Below, piece after piece: positions 1,095 through 22,579 of a stretch of DNA of 64,000 nt (positions within the stretch are counted from its first letter, which is position 1; every line of letters begins with the position of its first letter). Below the pieces are notes generated by a model. It saw nothing but the letters and a program-made list of their open reading frames with translations, had not been told where the DNA came from and did not search any database. The stretch spans positions 1,488,001 through 1,552,000 of the forward strand of contig NW_026943819.1 of assembly GCF_035594765.1 (NCBI RefSeq), in the 5' to 3' direction. The position numbers and the translations under genes were made by a program. The DNA is from Anolis carolinensis (taxonomy: Eukaryota).

Positions 1095-2441
1095 CTTTAT
1101 TTTTATACCCCGCCCCATCTCCCCAGAGGGACTTGGAGCGGCTTACATGGGGCCATGCCCGACAACAATACAACAGCAGCAATAAAACAATAAAACAAAT
1201 ATCGAGAATAAAACAAATGTCGCATCAGTAAAACATCAACATCAGTAAACAGTCATAAAAGTTGGCAAACAGCATAAAATGATTAAAAACGGGAAAGCTA
1301 AAAACATGGATCTGGGCCAGAGTGCAGAAAGCTTCGACATGGGAGAGGTAGTTTCACAGTTAAACTTCCCTCTGCCCTCCTCATTCCCAGCCCTCCTCTC
1401 TCACCCCCCTTTTCAGGGCTCTCCATCAAGGTGAAGCAGAATGGAAGGAACGTCACCCTGCAGTGCAGCGGAGGGAGCGGAGGGAGCGAGCCGTTCACGT
1501 GGGAGAAGGACGGGCACGTCTTGGATGACCACAAGGGAGAGTTGCTGCCCTTGGGCTCCGAAATGGATGACCCCAGAGGCTCCTTCTCCTGCTCTTCTGG
1601 GGACCAAACCGCCTCCCTGCAGGTCTTCTTCCGGAGTGAGTATGCCTACCTTCTTCCCCCTTTGTTGTCTCCCCAAAAAGCCATGAGAGTGGCACCCCGG
1701 AATATGAGACCCCAGGCCTGTGTTGCCAAGAGGTGAGGCTCTTCCTCACCTTTCAGAAGAGCCTGAAAACTTGGCTCTTCTGAAAGGCCTTTGGTAACGG
1801 ATTGACCTGTTGCCTATCTCATTTATTATACCTTGTTCCTTTAGCAGGCCATAGTGTATGCCTTTGCCAGCACTTTAACGGGACAATAGTTCTGGGATCT
1901 ACCTCACCCTGATTGAATCTGACACTAATTGTACTTTTTTGGCCCAGTTCTTTTTTTAGAGCCGACCCAGGATTTTATCATAGTACAGTAGAGTCTCACT
2001 TATCCAACATAAACGGGCCGGCAGAATGTTGGATAAGCAAATATGTTGGATAATAAGGAGGGATTAAGGAAAAGGCTATTAAACATCAAATTAGGTTATG
2101 ATTTTACAAATTAAGCACTAAAACAAATTTGACAGAAAAAGTAGTTCAATACGCAGTAATGCTATGTAGTAATTACTGTATTTATGAATTTAGCACCAAA
2201 ATATCACGATGTATTGAAAACATTGACTACAGAAATGCGTTGGATAATCCAGAACGTTGGATAAGCGAGTGTTGGATAAGAGAGACTCTACTGTATATTT
2301 ATTGTATCTTGACCTATGACTTGTTTTGTTGTTGATTGATTGTTTTATTGTTATGTTTGTATATTGTTTGTGACCTGGGCTTGGCCCCATGTGAGCCGCC
2401 CCGAGTCCCTTCGGGGAGATGGGGCGGGGTATAAAAATAAA

Positions 2442-2490
<49 letters not shown>

Positions 2491-3674
2491 TGTTATTATT
2501 ATGACCCCCTGCTCTGCACTCTTCCTTCCTTGCCCCACAGTGTGCCAGAACTGCATCCACCTCGATGTCCCGACCATCGTGGGGATTGTGATAGCCAGCC
2601 TTGTGGCCACCCTGTTCCTGGCCGTTGCCGTCTTCTTCCTGGCTGTGGAGGAGCCCAGCCTGCGGTCTCAAGGTGAGAGGCGGGTGGGTGCTTGGTGGGG
2701 CCGGAAGCCTTCCTTCTCCTCCATGGTGGTGCCTGGTCTTTATTTATCGGATCAGAGGGTACAGTTGTAATGTGTTTAAAAAATCAAAGTTAAAAACTTG
2801 GCATGATACTAAATGTCCTTTGACCAGAAGCTTGCCACTTGGAGCGCCTCTGGCGTTGCTATAAGAAGGTCCTCCATTGTGCACTGCATTGTAATAGGTG
2901 GTCTGTGGTTTGCTCTTCTCCACCGTCACATGTCGTGGACTCCACTTTGTGGCCCCATTTCCGAAGGTTGGCTCTGCATCTCGTGGTGCCAGAGCGCCAT
3001 CTCTTCAGCGCCTTCCAAGTCGCCCTGTCTTCTGTGTGCCCAGGAGGGAGTCTCTCATCTGGCATCAGCCACTGATTGAGGTTCCGCGTTTTAGCCTGCC
3101 ACTTTTGGACTCTCGCTTGCTGAGGTGTTCCTGCGAGTATCTCTGTGGATCTTAGAAGACTATTTCTTGATTTAAGACGTTGGCGTGCTGGCTGATATTC
3201 GAACAGAGGATGGGCCAGAGATGTCACTGCCTTGGACCAAGCACTGCTTTGTCGGGAGTGCTTTAGTTGTGCTTTCCTTGTATAATAGCATAGAGAGATG
3301 GGTGTCCTTTAGAAGTCCCTTCCAACCATTTACCATTTATGTGTTTTAAATGCAATTTTTTATCCTGTATTTTTGTTTTAATTGATATATTGTATTACTG
3401 TTTTATCTTTTTATAGTGTGATTCGTATTATGTTGCCTATATTTTGTCCTATATTGTTTGGGCCTCTGCCCCATGTAAGCCGCTCCGAGTCCCTGCAGGG
3501 AGATGGTGGCGGGGTATAAAGTTTTATTATTATTAACTCTAGTATTCAATAATAATAATAATAACAACAACAACAACAACAACAACAACAACGATGCTAC
3601 TCGTCATCGTCTCACTCGTTCAGTCGTTTTCGACTCTTCGTGACCGAGTGAGACGACGACGAGTAGCATCGTTG

Positions 3675-3706
<32 letters not shown>

Positions 3707-4501
3707 GAATACTAGAGTTAATAATAATAAATAATAAAACTTTATTTACTACTCCTTGTTAATAATGATGATGCTGGTCTTGAGGCTGTTGTTATGGTCT
3801 TCTGCCTTTCTTCCAGCAGACACCTTCTTCGTGTACATGATTTCATTCCCAGGTTGTGCCTGGTAACATAACACGCACAGACATCTCCCTGGGCAGCAGA
3901 AAGGATGCTTTGTCTGTGGTAATGGGGCTCTGAAGAGGACCTTCCCTATGGGGCCTCCGAAAAGTCCCCTTGCCCAGTCAATGTGGGCACGCTTCTCCTT
4001 TCTCTGCCTGGCTCCCCTTGGCTGACCCAGCCTTTCCCAGGGTCTAAGGTTTCCTCTTTTCTCTTTTGTTCTTTCTCTCCTTTTGTTAGCTTCCGATAAG
4101 CAGAACCTGCTGGCCAACGAGCAGCTCTATCAGGTGAGTGCATCGGTTGCCACAAGGCTGGCTTCGGCCTCCCTGCCATTGTGGAGCCTTTGGCTGGGCC
4201 GCTCTTCCTATGCTTGGGGAGACCACGAGCAACTGTTGCCTTTGCCCCGGGCCGTTGGTGGCTTGGCTCAGCCTCCGAGCTCAGAAGACTGGCCTTTGCT
4301 CCTGTATCTTGTTCTTTCGTGGCCTCCTGGGCCGTCCCATGGCTGCTGTTGGTCCCTAACCGTAATCCTTGGGTGCCTTTCCGCCTCTGCCCGTTCCTTG
4401 AGCATGGCTTAACGCAGGCCTCTCTTCCCCACCAGCCCCTTGGAGAACGCAACAACGGGCAGTACAGCCAAGTCGGGGTTGCCAAGACGCGCCGCCGGTG
4501 A
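584..4501 (+). CDS. CD3D: T-cell surface glycoprotein CD3 gamma/delta chain (non-mammalian CD3G/CD3D type, in the CD3D position), 6 coding exons, 185 aa
   Basis: Exons 584-638, 796-837, 1417-1635, 2541-2672, 4090-4133, 4436-4501; all GT-AG and in frame (558 nt). Contains a leader, an Ig domain (VTLQC..FTWEKDG..DPRGSFSC), the RMCQNC CxxC stalk, a TM helix, the DKQNLL di-leucine motif and the ITAM YQPL-x7-YSQV. Convergent with CD3E, as mammalian CD3D is. Confidence 0.93.
1986..2293. mobile_element. Tc1/mariner (pogo/Tigger-like) MITE family A
   Basis: TIR CAGTAGAGTCTCACTTATCCAA with TA TSD. Other copies: 8866-9189, 12618-13265 (with inner copy 12823-13145), 14384-14706, 18304-18623, 23248-23570, 25046-25351, 37290-37609, 43558-43865, 49310-49632, 54978-55320, 57194-57490. 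Confidence 0.85.
2742..3232 (-). mobile_element. Vingi/ingi-like non-LTR retrotransposon, 3' fragment
   Basis: ORF 2859-3227: HPLFEYQPARQRLKSRNS..LPPGHTE..TWKAL..WG..C..EEQT.DHLLQC; short TAAA tail. Confidence 0.65.
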
Positions 4502-5478
4502 AAATGGGGCGCAGGAGGGGAGCATCCAGTTTGCCCCTGGCGTTCCTGCCAATCTCGATCTCTTCACCTTGAGCAGATCACAACAGTTTCTGCTTCTTTT
4601 ACCAAGACGTCCAGATGGGAAATGGCTCCAGGCAGTAGAATAGGAAGCCAGGTTTGAGCCAAATGATTTGTATACTGATATTTCTATTTCTGCCCCTGCC
4701 TTATGGAATGCCTTGCCGCCCTATATGAGAGCCATGCGTGAGTTAGGGCCTTTTACCCTAGCACTCAAGACCTGGCTCTTTACTAGAGCTTTTAATCTAT
4801 GTTAATTTTATCAATATTTGTATGTATGTATTTTTATCCTTTACAATTTTATCTTGTAAATCGCCTAGAGCATCTTGGATGGAGGGCGATTAATAAGTAA
4901 TTAAATGATGATGATGACGACGATATATTTAGTTTCACAGCATATTACATACCATTTTGGAGAGACTGAATGTACACCTGTGTGTCGCTAACACATTTTA
5001 GTTGGAGTCTTGTTGATATATGTCTGATATATGTTCTATACTGAAAACTGCTCTGTGTAGCATTTAAATCTGGATGATTGCAATCTATAAATCTTTATAC
5101 TCTGTAAGTTACTACTCTGTAAGTTACGACCAATACTGACTGAATTTGGTCATCAGTTGTATTATTATTTCTATTATTGTTAACATTATTATGTATATGA
5201 TGCTCTAATATACATATTGTGTTCTATGCTTTGAACCTTTATCGTGGTGCATATTTTTCAGATATTGTTTAGAGTAGAATAGGAAGCCCAAAATAGTTTG
5301 CTGTGCACTCATTTTGTAAAGTGATCCCCTCTGTCTCGTTAAGAAAGGCATGGGCAAACTTGGGCCCTCCTGGTGTTTTGGACTTCAACTCCCACAATTC
5401 CTAACAGAAGGGTTCAGTTTTGTGTCTCCTTGTAGCTCAAGTGGGGCCTCTTGCGTGCCATGCCCACCCCTTTCCCTC

Positions 5479-8778: not shown

Positions 8779-11360
8779 TACAGGAAAAGAATACATGTAA
8801 TAATAAATAGATTAAAATAATAAATGCAATAATAATAAGATCAGAGTGAAATAATAAATGTATTACAGTAGAGTCTCACTTATCCAAGCCTCGCTTATCC
8901 AAGTTTCTGGATTATCCAAGCCATTTTTGTAGTCAATGTTTTCAATATATCGTGATATTTTGGTGCTAAATTCGTAAATACAGTAAATTACAACATAACA
9001 TTACTGCGTATTGAACTGCTTTTTCTGTCAAATTTGTTGTAAAACATGATGTTTTGGGGCTTAATTTGTAAAATCATAACCTAATTTGATGTTTAATAGG
9101 CTTTTCCTTAATCCCTCCTTATTATCCAAGATATTCACTTATCCAAGCTTCTGCCGGCCTGTTTAGCTTGGATAAGTGAGACTCTACTGTAATAATAATA
9201 AAAATAGAGTAAAATAAATGTAATAGTAGCAACAATAATAGAGAAAAATAATAAATGTAATAATACCAATAATAATAGAGAAAAATAATAAATGTACCAT
9301 ATATTCTCGAGTATAAGCTGACCCAAATATAAGCCAACCAGAACCCTCACCCGATTATAAGCCGAGGGGGGCTTTTTCAGTCTTAAAAAAAGGGCTGAAG
9401 AACTAGGCTTATACTCGAGTATATACAGTACATCTTTGTGATAGTTGATGATTCCATTAGAGATGGTGAAGGGGCCATAAGCCAGAAAATAGTAAACTAT
9501 TGCTTATGTAGCTTTGCCTCTGCATATGCCCTTCCCTTCCTGTGAGCTGGTGCCTTTCTTCAGGAAGTTCCAAAGGGAGAAGAAAGATCAGAGTAAACGA
9601 GTTAGGTCATAGGTATCACTTATGGGTGTGGAAGGTGAGGAAGATCCTCAGGCATTGGTCAAATTTTAGATAAGCCAAAGGTATATATTCTTTGTTGCGA
9701 CAGTCTTTTGCATAGTATGGACCCACTAAAGTGGGCGCATACGGCGATTTGCCTTGTCATCAGCTGTGATAACAATAAAAGTCTTGTTTTATTGCTCTCC
9801 TGGGATTCTCTCCTTTCCTTCCAACAATGGAAGGAGAAGCGGCCACTCACCCGGAGGCCTCCCACGGGCGGCTCCCACGCCGTCTCCTCCCCGGAAGCGG
9901 GCTTTGCGGTTCTTGCAGCAAAAGTAGACCAGGCAGAGGACCCCCAGGGTCAGGAGGAGGTCCGAGACGATGATTCCGGCCAGGAGCCCGAGGCCCAGCT
10001 CCACGCAGTCCTGGCAAACTGCAAGAAGGGTCACTCAGTAGGACATCCCGTGGCCTTGCTCTCCTCCCTCCAACCACAGTCTGCCCCCCAGCACAGACCT
10101 TTGACCTTCAGGAAGAGCTTGCTGCTTCCGCAAGTACACTCTTCCCTGCGCTCGACAATATCCGTGAGGATCAAAGGGTTGCGATGCTCCTTCTGATTGC
10201 TACACTGGATTGTTGCATCTGTGGGGCAGCTGAGGGTCACGGTGCCCTTCCAGACGTCCACTCTGATCTCTGAAGAGAAGCAATGAGAAGGCAGTGGGGG
10301 GAGAGGAAGGATTGCATGGGCAAACTTGGGGACTTCAGGTGTTTTGGACTGCAACTCCCACCATTCCTAACAGCCTCAGACCCCTTCCTCCCCCCCCCCC
10401 CCCAGCTGCTTAAGTGGCTGGGGGGAAAATCCAGCACTACGCTGGCAAAGATACTGGTGGGTACTGGCCCCCCCAAGCCCACCCCAGTTGTTTTCCCCAG
10501 TCTACCCAGTGCCTGCTCTTCCCTGAATAAGGGCCCTTCAGTCTTCCCAGAATAAGGGAATAAGGGCAAGAACTGTTCTGAGAAAGCTGCACAGATCCTT
10601 ACCGTTGGCAACGCTGCTGCAAGCAGGGCCAGCTGCAAAAGAAAGAGAAGGCACCAATGAGGAGGACATAGGCATCGCTTGGCAATGGATCTTGGGTGAA
10701 GAACTGAGCTTGCTTCCTTTTTGGACTTGTGGGTCGCAGGGCTCTTTTGGGGACCTTTGTGGGCCCGACTCCAGGAAGCAGAGGGAGAGACCCTGTTGGA
10801 CCCTTGGGCTGAGTCGCTGGGTTGCTGTGAGTTTTCCGGCCATGGAAGCCTCCGACGATACAAAACAGCAGGGTCCTTTCCCCAGCTATCTTTGTTTCCT
10901 TCCTCAAATGGGGTCGGCAGGAGTCCGTTTGTGGCCTTGTCTGGCCTGCGGGCATCACCCCAGAGAGGAAAGCCCACCACTGCTGTCTGGTGGGATTGCA
11001 GGGAAGTGGGTTGGGAAGGCCTCGGCAGTTCTCTCTTCCTATGGAGCATTGTCTTGACCGAAGGGCATCACGCTGTGCTCAAAGGCCCCTTATGCCAAGG
11101 GGAAGGTGGGCTCAGAGCCACAATTGCCCTTCCAGTGCTGGCCAATGCCCCCTGCCTTTCAGGGGTGAGGGTCTTCCCAAGGATGGGATACCCCTTGCCC
11201 TTGCTATAGCTCTGCCCCAATGCCTCTGTCCTCCTCTCCCAGTCCCACATTGCCTACTCTGCATTGGGATGCCAACCCCCCACCCCAGATACACATTGCC
11301 TCCCATGGGATGCTTACAGAGAAGGGCCAGCAAGGCTGCGACAAGGGCCCCGCGACGCAT
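6584..11360 (-). CDS. CD3E: T-cell surface glycoprotein CD3 epsilon chain, 6 coding exons, 171 aa
   Basis: Minus-strand exons 11360-11318, 10632-10603, 10269-10099, 10018-9851, 7319-7273, 6640-6584 (516 nt, in frame). Has the VCQDC stalk, a TM with Asp (GIIVSDLLLT), basic KNRKAR, proline-rich PPPVPNPDY and the ITAM YEPI-x7-YAGL. The 30-nt exon 2 is the least certain. Confidence 0.94.
6672..7062 (+). mobile_element. Solo LTR, family X
   Basis: TG...CA ends, 4-bp TSD CAGT, internal TATA and AATAAA; homologous to 9467-9826. Confidence 0.8.
7535..7879 (+). mobile_element. Solo LTR inserted in a CR1 3' fragment (CR1 about 7422-7940)
   Basis: TG...CA ends, 5-bp TSD ATTTT/ATTGT; the CR1 sequence resumes exactly across the insertion. 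Confidence 0.65.
8412..9428. mobile_element. Tc1/mariner (Tc2-like) non-autonomous transposon containing MITE A; second copy at 25471-26115
   Basis: TIR CTGTATATACT(C/T)GA(G/A)TATAAGCC with TA TSD. Confidence 0.8.
9467..9826 (+). mobile_element. Solo LTR, family X
   Basis: TG...CA ends, 4-bp TSD ATGG, internal TATA and AATAAA. Confidence 0.8.
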
Positions 11361-19994: not shown

Positions 19995-22579
19995 AACATT
20001 GAGGCTGGGAGGCCATCTGTCAGGGGTGCTTTGCTTGTGCTTTTGGTCCACAAAGGCAGAAAGGGGTTGGGCTAAATATATTATTATCATTATTGCTCGG
20101 TGGCCAGCTATAGTCCGGCCCTCCAGCGGTCTGAGGGATTGTAAACTGGCCTCCAGTTTTAAAAGTTTGGGGACCCCTGCTCCAAACTATGGCCTGTGGG
20201 CCTGATGTGGCACAACTTGACTATCTGATTGGCCCAAAATAAGTCCAGACTTCCCATTGAAGCACTGGCCAATTTATGTTGGTGGCGCAGTGAGCTGCTG
20301 AACTTGCTGACCGAGAGGTCGGTGGTTCTATTCCTGAGAGTGGGGTGAGCTCCTGCTGTTAGCCCCAGCTTCTGCCAACCTAGCAGTTCGAAAGCGTCGG
20401 AGCCCCCGGTGGCGTAGTGGATTAAAGCCTTGTGACTTTAAGGTTGGGTTTGCTGACCTGAAGGCTGCCAGGTTCGAATCCCACCCGGGGAGAGCGCGGA
20501 TGAGCTCCCTCTATCAGTTCCAGCTCCATGCGGGGACATGAGAGAAGCCTCCCACAAGGATGGTGGGAGGCTTCTCTCATGTGCCCGCATGGAGTTGGAG
20601 CTGGAGTTGGAGGGGACGTTGCCCAGGGCAAAGTCCCCTGGGCAACATCCTTGCAGAAGGCCAATTCTCTCACACCAGAAGTGACTCAGGTTGCTCCTGA
20701 CACGAAAAAAAAGTTCGAAAGCAAGCAAATGTGAGTAGATGAATAGGTACCGCTCTGGCGGGAAGGTAACATTGGTGCTCCATGCAGCCATGCTTGTGAC
20801 CACATGACCTTGGAGGTGTCTACGGACATCGTCCAGCCCTTCAACACTGTTNNNNNNNNNNNNNNNNNNNNNNNNNNNNNNNNNNNNNNNNNNNNNNNNN
20901 NNNNNNNNNNNNNNNNNNNNNNNNNNNNNNNNNNNNNNNNNNNNNNNNNNNNNNNNNNNNNNNNNNNNNNNNNNNNNNNNNNNNNNNNNNNNNNNNNNNN
21001 NNNNNNNNNNNNNNNNNNNNNNNNNNNNNNNNNNNNNNNNNNNNNNNNNNNNNCAGGATCAAGCCTATCCGCCGCAGACGGGCCGCTTCTCGGGCAGAGT
21101 CACCTGGGACGGCAATGCATTCAAGAGCGACGCCTCCATCATGCTCTGGAACGTCGGCCCCGGGGACAATGGGACCTTCTTCTGCCACATCAAGAACCCC
21201 CCGGACGTCGATGGGGTGGCCGGAGAGATCGAGCTGAGCGTCGTCCTGAAAGGTCCGCCCGAGCGGGAGACGGAGGGTGAGGGGAGGGGGCCAAGGGCAT
21301 GGGCACCCCCTCCCCACATACACACCCTGCTTCTTCCCTTTTCTCCTCCTCACAGTGAGCTTCTCGGAGATCCACGTTTTGGCCCTGACCATCGGTGGGG
21401 CCTGTGCTCTGATGATTGCCGTGGTGGTCGTGGTGGTGGTCTGCCGGCAGCGACGGAAGGCCGGGAAGGACCAGGCGGAGGAGACGGAGATGTAAGTGCC
21501 AGGGGGTGTGTGAGGTTCTCTTCTTCAGCACCAAGACACTCTGGGTAGATTCAAACAGATTTATTGTACGGAATACCAGAATCTTCTCTGTAGCCCATTT
21601 ATATAGGGGCTCTCACATACCAGAGGGCAATTGAGGTTTTTATGGCTGGCCAGTTTTATGGCTGGCATCTGTTCTTTGTCAGAAAGCATCAAGACACATG
21701 CTGGGTAGATTCAAACAGGTTTATTGTACGGAATACTAGAATCTTCTCTGTAGCCCATTTATATAGGGGCTCTCACATACCAGAGGGTAATTGAGGTTTT
21801 TATGGCTGGCCAGTTTTATGGCTGGCATCTGTTCTTTGTCAGAAAGCATCAAGACACACGCTGGGTAGATTCAAACAGGTTTATTGTACGGAATACCAGA
21901 ATCTTCTCTGTAGCCCATTTATATCGGGGCTCTCACATACCAGAGGGTAATTGAGGTTTTTATGGCTGGCCAGTTTTATGGCTGGCATCTGTTCTTTGTC
22001 AGAAAGCATCAAGACACACGCTGGGTAAATTCAAACAGGTTTATTGTACGGAATACTAGAATCTTCTCTGTAGCCCATTTATATAGGGGCTCTCACATAC
22101 CAGAGGGCAATTGAGGTTTTTATGGCTGGCCAGTTTTATGGCTGGCATCTGTTCTTTGTCAGAAAGCATCAAGACACACGCTGGGTAGATTCAAACAGGT
22201 TTATTGTACGGAATACTAGAATCTTCTCTGTAGCCCATTTATATAGGGGCTCTCACATACCAGAGGGAATTTGAGGTTTTATGGCTGGCACCTGTTCTTT
22301 GTCAGCGCTTGCTCTGTGTCCGGAGATGTCATAAGATCGGAGATCATGACATCGTGGGATCGAGGGGGCAATGGGGCAGCGGGCCTTGTTGGTGGGGTGC
22401 TGGGTCTCTCTTTGGTGCAAAGGGGTCCTTATGGGCCAAGCCCCCGCCTCATCCCTTGGCTGCCTCTTCTGTCCTGACTTCTGCTCTTTGTCTCCCCAAA
22501 CGCCAGGCCGGAGAAGGAGAAGCTGCGCAGAGTCCCGGAAGAGGAGAGGGAGGCCACACTGCCCGGAGGGGAGGCCTGA
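13534..22579 (+). CDS. MPZL2: Myelin protein zero-like 2 (EVA1), 5 coding exons, about 212 aa
   Basis: Exons 13534-13585, 18963-19129 (167 nt), [gap]21054-21252, 21356-21491, 22507-22579. IgV domain [56 protein letters not shown], followed by [17 protein letters not shown]. About 12 nt at the start of exon 3 fall in the N gap. Confidence 0.92.
14708..16160. repeat. Diverged minisatellite with (TAA)n spacers, MPZL2 intron 1
   Basis: About 7 copies of AACCTGAAAGCCTATCAGCCCCAGCCCATTCCCCACAG..TCCACCTCTCCTTCGGCTCAGGTA. Confidence 0.8.
16591..17927 (+). mobile_element. R4/Dong-clade non-LTR retrotransposon, 3' part, with internal tandem duplications
   Basis: CRLC..DHILSCC zinc knuckle and the PD..D restriction-like endonuclease ([15 protein letters not shown]); flanked by (TAA)n; one in-frame stop. 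Confidence 0.85.
19817..20179. mobile_element. hAT-superfamily MITE; larger copy at 34695-36188, partial copy at 1-145
   Basis: TIR CAGGGGTCCCCAAACT with 8-bp TSD CTCCAAAC; the second copy has TSD (T/C)TTTGGAG. Confidence 0.85.
20852..21053. other. Assembly gap; further gaps at 50123-50311 and 51043-51358
   Basis: Runs of N. Confidence 1.
21532..22305. repeat. 160-bp tandem repeat, about 4.8 copies, MPZL2 intron 4
   Basis: Unit starts CAAGACAC..CTGGGTAGATTCAAACAG at about 21532, 21690, 21850, 22010 and 22170. Confidence 0.95.

Follow-up and report, generated by a model that had tools for sequence, protein, structure and literature searches.

Assembly of the TCR in the membrane follows a rule in which each basic transmembrane (TM) residue of the receptor is held between a pair of acidic ones, which makes three basic and six acidic residues for the whole complex. 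This basic/acidic pairing is an organising principle for the TCR and for many other activating immune receptors, and it rests on mammalian mutagenesis, where loss of either acid is deleterious. In CD3 dimers, replacing either acid leads to an assembly defect, and the CD3 ectodomains add to assembly specificity (PMC1440944). In human T cells, mutating the TM acid of CD3 gamma is likewise reported to affect assembly of the receptor (PMC2120718). The DAP12-KIR system, where the two acids of the adaptor dimer were varied, gives a graded picture: Asp/Asn dimers are impaired, and Asp/Ser or Asp/Ala dimers assemble at very low levels (PMC1440944). For the homologous DAP12-NKG2C triad, a simulation study proposes a productive state with one protonated, neutral Asp hydrogen-bonding a charged Asp (bioRxiv 10.1101/2020.12.22.424036); such a singly protonated clamp makes a neutral H-bond donor at one of the two positions plausible.

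In this study, we analysed a CD3 gamma/delta gene in a stretch of 64,000 nucleotides from Anolis carolinensis (the window). The gene is complete on the plus strand, with six exons, canonical splice sites and an open frame of 185 codons plus stop, which bears out the preliminary description in that the gene outside the TM residue is intact. Exon 1 (584-638), found by tblastn to P0001 and delimited by frame and a GT donor, carries the start codon and signal peptide MGRGRLRLPVAALGLLFAG; exon 2 (796-837), lying between an AG acceptor and a GT donor within a tblastn match at 783-929 and in frame, carries the end of the signal peptide and the mature N-terminus. Both agree with the public model P0004. 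Exon 3 (1417-1635), covered by the spliced contigs of runs X19 and X20, encodes the Ig-like ectodomain, of CD3 type according to Pfam: its translation scores 52.6 bits against PF16681 and 38.8 bits against PF16680, both above the cut-offs. Exon 5 (4090-4133), reached through the joint 2672>4090, encodes SDKQNLLANEQLYQ, with the first ITAM half, and is 100% identical to P0001 in tblastn; exon 6 (4436-4501), reached through the joint 4133>4436 and recovered by tblastn in the same frame, encodes PLGERNNGQYSQVGVAKTRRR and ends in the stop TGA at 4499-4501. To represent this gene, sequence searches used single exons or the public models P0003 and P0004, the exons being joined solely for the frame check. 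The ITAM region, YQPL-GERNNGQ-YSQV, is split between exons 5 and 6 and ends in Val, where the motif calls for Leu or Ile; the Pfam ITAM profile gives the public model P0003 20.1 bits, below its cut-off of 22.2. Squamates vary in this second half: YSQV at window positions 4436-4501 (Val vs the canonical Leu/Ile), YSHV in A. sagrei, Sceloporus and Erythrolamprus, and YSHI in most other squamates.

Exon 4 (2541-2672, plus strand) comprises the CxxC stalk, the TM helix and the juxtamembrane segment. Its AG acceptor ends at 2540 and its GT donor starts at 2673; read in frame from 2543 it translates as CQNCIHLDVPTIVGIVIASLVATLFLAVAVFFLAVEEPSLRSQ, with the core CQNCIHLDVPTIVGIVIA-S-LVAT. The stalk motif is CQNC, at 2543-2554, and the Met placed before it in the preliminary description is a split codon, A|TG, spanning the junction of exons 3 and 4. 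Residues 1-37 of the exon align without gaps to residues 93-129 of CD3 delta and 104-140 of CD3 gamma (HMMER against PDB sequences, 6jxr and relatives), so that a Ser falls on CD3 delta residue 111, an Asp, and on CD3 gamma residue 122. Thus, 14 residues after the CxxC motif, where an Asp or Glu is conserved, the anole gene has Ser in DNA and mRNA contigs alike, encoded by AGC at 2597-2599 with no variant in four runs, while the Thr at i+4 is retained (ACC, 2609-2611). The window closely matches public A. carolinensis models, and over exon 4 two of these, P0003 and P0004, are identical to it. The preliminary description had read the site in the same way, namely as a Ser in place of the acid, in ungapped alignment to human CD3D and CD3G, with the i+4 Thr kept and at a distance of two base changes from Asp (GAC to AGC); codon, alignment to the PDB chains and contigs agree with it, an Asp codon being GAY.

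With the A. sagrei protein as query we retrieved 98 sauropsid CD3 gamma/delta proteins. Further ones came from a profile search against 1.84 billion representatives, with species names assigned through cluster look-ups; searches with the TM region gained no further taxa. Ser is present in 17 of 17 non-gecko squamate sequences, from 15 named species plus the skink transcript P0016. They include iguanians (Anolis carolinensis, A. sagrei with two models, Sceloporus, Pogona and Phrynocephalus), lacertoids (Podarcis, Zootoca and the amphisbaenian Rhineura), anguimorphs (Elgaria and Varanus), snakes (Candoia, Erythrolamprus, Pseudonaja and Crotalus) and skinks (Lerista and P0016, the latter sister to Lerista with 98/96 support). 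The acid is kept in all four gecko sequences, as Asp in Gekko kuhli and a gecko-like transcript and as Glu in Eublepharis and Sphaerodactylus, and the tuatara, turtle and bird sequences returned have Asp without exception (78/78). In the gene tree geckos are sister to the clade of all squamate Ser sequences (94/89 support). The preliminary description had presented the substitution as a trait of "the lizard"; this does not hold, since geckos retain Asp or Glu while snakes and skinks share the Ser. Across squamates, tuatara, turtles and birds, Ser is instead confined to non-gecko squamates and, judged from these alignments, fixed in every one sampled, so that it is no peculiarity of anoles. Non-gecko squamates make up most of the roughly 10,000 squamate species, in a clade roughly 200 million years old.

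At the DNA level, the Ser codon could be read in eight members of the clade (seven named species and the skink transcript). The skink transcript uses AGT and the other seven AGC; in geckos, the outgroup whose codons were read, it is GAC (Asp) or GAA (Glu). The presence of AGC or AGT in all eight fits a single origin, and the codons fit a single two-step change from GAC, via AAC or GGC, in the stem lineage of the non-gecko squamates. All 17 sequences agree in the Ser column, where TM columns hold on average 3.2 different residues; the Ala preceding it is also invariant, and the i+4 Thr is found in 16 of the 17. Such invariance is the pattern that purifying selection would give, and not that of a freed position.

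Loss of the TM acid is not unique to squamates, an idea that we rejected, and the acid is not universally conserved elsewhere, a point on which the preliminary description needs correcting. In chondrichthyans, a CD3 gamma/delta paralog clade (P0190 from Pristiophorus, P0221 from Mustelus, and P0216) likewise has Ser 14 residues after CxxC; the i+4 position is Thr in P0190, whereas P0221 and P0216 have Ser or Phe there. This clade is separate and nested among Asp copies (P0192, P0233 and P0170, from Narcine, Heterodontus and Amblyraja/Leucoraja), which points to an independent origin and loss of the acid, presumably alongside an acid-bearing paralog. Among protein models, Asn takes the place of the acid in the teleosts Coilia grayii (P0179) and Hypomesus transpacificus (P0219), whose gamma/delta-like proteins group together (92/89), and in a CD3D model of the shrew Sorex araneus (P0167). 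On the way from GAC to AGC, one of the two single-step intermediates would encode Asn. On sequence grounds the squamate case differs from these in that the sole gamma/delta gene is affected. A full-text literature search found no published report of the squamate Ser, although an earlier mention may exist.

What, then, does a TCR assembled with such a chain look like? The explanation that we consider probable is that a single expressed gamma/delta gene exchanged its TM Asp for Ser in the stem lineage of non-gecko squamates, after the gecko split, that purifying selection has held the Ser since, and that the CD3 epsilon Asp together with Ser and Thr hydroxyls replaces the acid pair. With one gamma/delta gene serving both CD3 heterodimers, each TCR Lys would meet one carboxylate, that of the epsilon Asp, and hydroxyls; those facing the Lys would come from the gamma/delta Ser and two i+4 Thr, in place of the canonical acid pair. 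The Ser hydroxyl might stand in for the neutral, H-bond-donating member of the acid pair, leaving Lys(+), Asp(-) and Ser-OH in charge balance, although the shorter side chain of Ser may fail to reach either the Lys or the Asp. The gamma/delta-epsilon dimer would, at any rate, combine a Ser with an Asp and not two acidic TM residues. With four acids, if zeta is normal, the receptor of non-gecko squamates should assemble poorly on mammalian data, yet the residue is fixed and conserved. Since Asp/Ser pairs assemble poorly in mammalian systems, some compensation is implied in squamates, and Ser alone should not suffice, given PMC1440944 and PMC2120718. Lizard-specific helix packing or ectodomain contacts may offset the affinity so lost. 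A rewired intramembrane assembly code, as proposed in the preliminary description, is a reasonable inference from mammalian mutagenesis (PMC1440944). In its most specific form, that all non-gecko squamate TCR-CD3 complexes have four rather than six membrane carboxylates, with Ser as a neutral H-bond partner and packing that rescues the Asp/Ser pair, we advance it tentatively, and somewhat on the doubtful side.

The strongest competitor is that the polar site of gamma/delta has become dispensable, CD3 and TCR being held together by ectodomain, stalk, the other helices and the epsilon Asp, with Ser as a tolerated filler. Constraint on the site would have eased, perhaps once gamma/delta T cells had been lost, and the level of surface TCR might be lower. 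The contribution of CD3 ectodomains to assembly specificity (PMC1440944) speaks for it, as does the Asn in teleosts and in the shrew model, which suggests that the position can be altered. So does the loss of TRG and TRD, which is reported as universal in squamates (PMC11754216) and would then predate the switch. However, a dispensable site should drift, and here the Ser is the same in every one of the 17 sequences amid variable neighbouring columns, with the flanking Ala and the i+4 Thr held as well. We therefore regard dispensability as unlikely, if still worth keeping in view. The link to gamma/delta TCR loss is in any case not a simple one. The TRE locus was likely present in the squamate common ancestor (PMC11754216); because TRG/TRD loss and TRE go back to the squamate ancestor while geckos keep the acid, both are older than the switch from Asp to Ser and show no strict coupling with it. 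Tight coupling of the Ser with gamma/delta TCR loss was rejected accordingly, geckos being without TRG and TRD (PMC11754216) and yet acid-bearing.

The compensation that the mammalian data call for could also reside in another subunit, such as a new polar or acidic residue in anole TRAC, TRBC, TREC or CD247, or in another stoichiometry, so that each site still sees two acids. The partner chains that were read make this improbable. In the window, the stalk and TM exon of CD3 epsilon (9894-10016, minus strand; six-frame scan) translates as ...GIIVSDLLLTLG, with CQDCVELGLGLLAGIIVSDLLLTLG as stalk plus TM, and keeps its Asp, with the codon GAC at 9960-9962, as the preliminary description had it. 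This Asp, within a DLL[LVI]T motif, is found in all seven squamate species read: Anolis (two), Pogona, Podarcis, Candoia, Varanus, Rhineura and Gekko, with Sphaerodactylus left out. Between the Ser clade and the geckos, represented here by Gekko, the CD3 epsilon TM shows no difference that could compensate, the segment being the same in both. For the receptor chains, where the preliminary description had suggested looking for compensating changes at the TM Lys and Arg of the same species, the comparison extends to a published alignment from the skink Tiliqua rugosa (PMC11754216, Supplementary Figure 4). Its TRAC retains both Arg and Lys, and Lys is also present in TRBC and in the new TREC chain. 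The usual basic residues are thus in place, and that alignment contains neither an added acid nor a compensating change in the TM segments of skink TRAC, TRBC and TREC (PMC11754216).

A third possibility, that a second gamma/delta paralog or an alternative, acid-bearing TM exon does the real work, fares worse still. It draws on the short upstream flank, only 583 bases of the window preceding the gene, and on the chondrichthyans, which as a group carry both Asp-type and Ser-type copies. Against it, CD3E lies tail-to-tail with CD3 gamma/delta in the window, on the minus strand, and the order UBE4A (-), CD3 gamma/delta (+), CD3E (-) recurs in eight squamate loci (A. sagrei, Podarcis, Pogona, Candoia, Varanus, Rhineura and the geckos Gekko and Sphaerodactylus). 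UBE4A is directly upstream and CD3E downstream in 8/8, with one gamma/delta exon set per locus and no second copy between them by tblastn with tuatara, gecko and anole proteins. Likewise, tblastn finds no other TM-exon match in the window apart from CD3E, protein searches return one gamma/delta gene per squamate species, and the mRNA contigs use exon 4. For the eight loci and the window, we accordingly rejected both a further paralog at the syntenic position and an alternative exon for the TM, and the single gamma/delta gene supposed in the preliminary description is confirmed there. We rate the whole possibility as very improbable, with a slim chance left for a dispersed paralog elsewhere in the genome, outside the syntenic slot. 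The same synteny, together with the gene tree, makes orthology clear, so the gene is a CD3 gamma/delta member by descent that lacks the TM-acid hallmark; by domain content, exon structure, synteny and tree it is a CD3 gamma/delta ortholog. Within the window itself, runs of N occupy 20852-21053, 50123-50311 and 51043-51358. Just past CD3E, the Pogona, Varanus and Rhineura loci contain a V-set Ig gene (L004 22807-25055, L008 20876-24145 and L009 25396-26073, respectively), presumably a neighbour of the MPZL2/MPZL3 type.

Public-run contigs were compared over 1300-4600 in four runs from four studies. Two runs gave unspliced genomic contigs across exon 4, and the other two, X19 and X20, gave spliced contigs of 789 and 803 nt, with the joints 1635>2541, 2672>4090 and 4133>4436, all GT..AG, which show that the gene is transcribed and correctly spliced. 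The AGC at 2597-2599 is unchanged in 4/4 runs, genomic (two) as well as spliced mRNA (two), with 0 mismatches across the TM exon in the spliced contigs. That an assembly error, a private allele or a pseudogene explains the Ser can therefore be dismissed with near certainty, for the four runs and studies are concordant and two include spliced transcripts, neither the frame nor any splice site is damaged, and the same residue recurs in independent assemblies of 14 other named species. Chance or miscall is likewise excluded because 16 further sequences from independent assemblies carry Ser, and the preliminary description was right to consider a single miscall unlikely.

Elsewhere in the compared region, four differences from the window appear among the runs. 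In the Ig exon, three runs have T>C at 1543, which turns Leu into Ser; the changes at 1568 (T>C) and 4498 (G>T) are synonymous, and that at 2695 (G>A) is intronic. The Ig exon of the public model P0004 differs as well, with GGSEGS vs GGSGGS. The intronic stretches 1966-2300 and 2743-3500 are high-copy interspersed repeats. In each of the four runs their summed contig depth climbs to between 1e5 and 1e6, and chimeric joints are numerous. Microsatellites of the type (ATT)n occupy about 2440-2495 and 3540-3720. Some predicted isoforms from distant taxa skip the stalk/TM exon and join the Ig exon straight to the ITAM exons (...FR-TSDKQ...): P0096 (Pogona isoform X2), P0151 (with a bird-like tail) and P0198 (with a mammal-like tail). 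Such isoforms would encode a chain without a membrane anchor.

Overall, a large and old clade with an invariant Ser, next to a gecko sister lineage that keeps the acid, provides a whole-clade natural exception through which the assembly rule becomes testable, and lets nature decide between two roles of the second acid, as a charge or as a neutral H-bond donor. The matched gecko and lizard sequences should be useful for finding the compensation. If the explanation through epsilon Asp and hydroxyls is true, squamates would offer natural evidence that one charged acid per site suffices, as the singly protonated clamp model proposes. The Ser is also a further T-cell trait that sets squamates apart from other amniotes, beside gamma/delta TCR loss and TRE gain, and it has relevance for the engineering of receptor-adaptor pairs with altered membrane codes.

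Compared with human CD3 delta and gamma (6jxr), the anole chain shares the Ig-like ectodomain, the CxxC stalk, a single TM helix, a putative ITAM, a gap-free stalk and TM segment and the i+4 Thr. It differs in the Ser that stands in for Asp111 of delta and for residue 122 of gamma, in the second ITAM half YSQV, and in that one squamate gene, not two, serves both dimers. The single CD3 gamma/delta genes of geckos, tuatara, turtles and birds (P0009, P0026, P0046, P0029 and about 78 turtle and bird sequences) are closer: they are orthologous, with the same exon structure and the A-x-x-x-x-T frame, and geckos also share the UBE4A / CD3 gamma/delta / CD3E arrangement. Yet all these chains keep Asp or Glu (gecko codons GAC/GAA), where non-gecko squamates have AGC or AGT. 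The Ser-type paralog of chondrichthyans has the same residue in the same register, but it arose independently and an acid-bearing paralog presumably stands alongside; in the teleost and Sorex variants the carboxylate is lost at the same position, but to Asn and not to Ser. The nearest functional parallel is found in the DAP12 Asp/Ser heterodimer mutants (PMC1440944), where an Asp and a Ser likewise face a receptor Lys at a positionally homologous site. Those dimers are engineered and assemble at very low levels, whereas the squamate Asp/Ser pair is natural and conserved, and hence presumably works.
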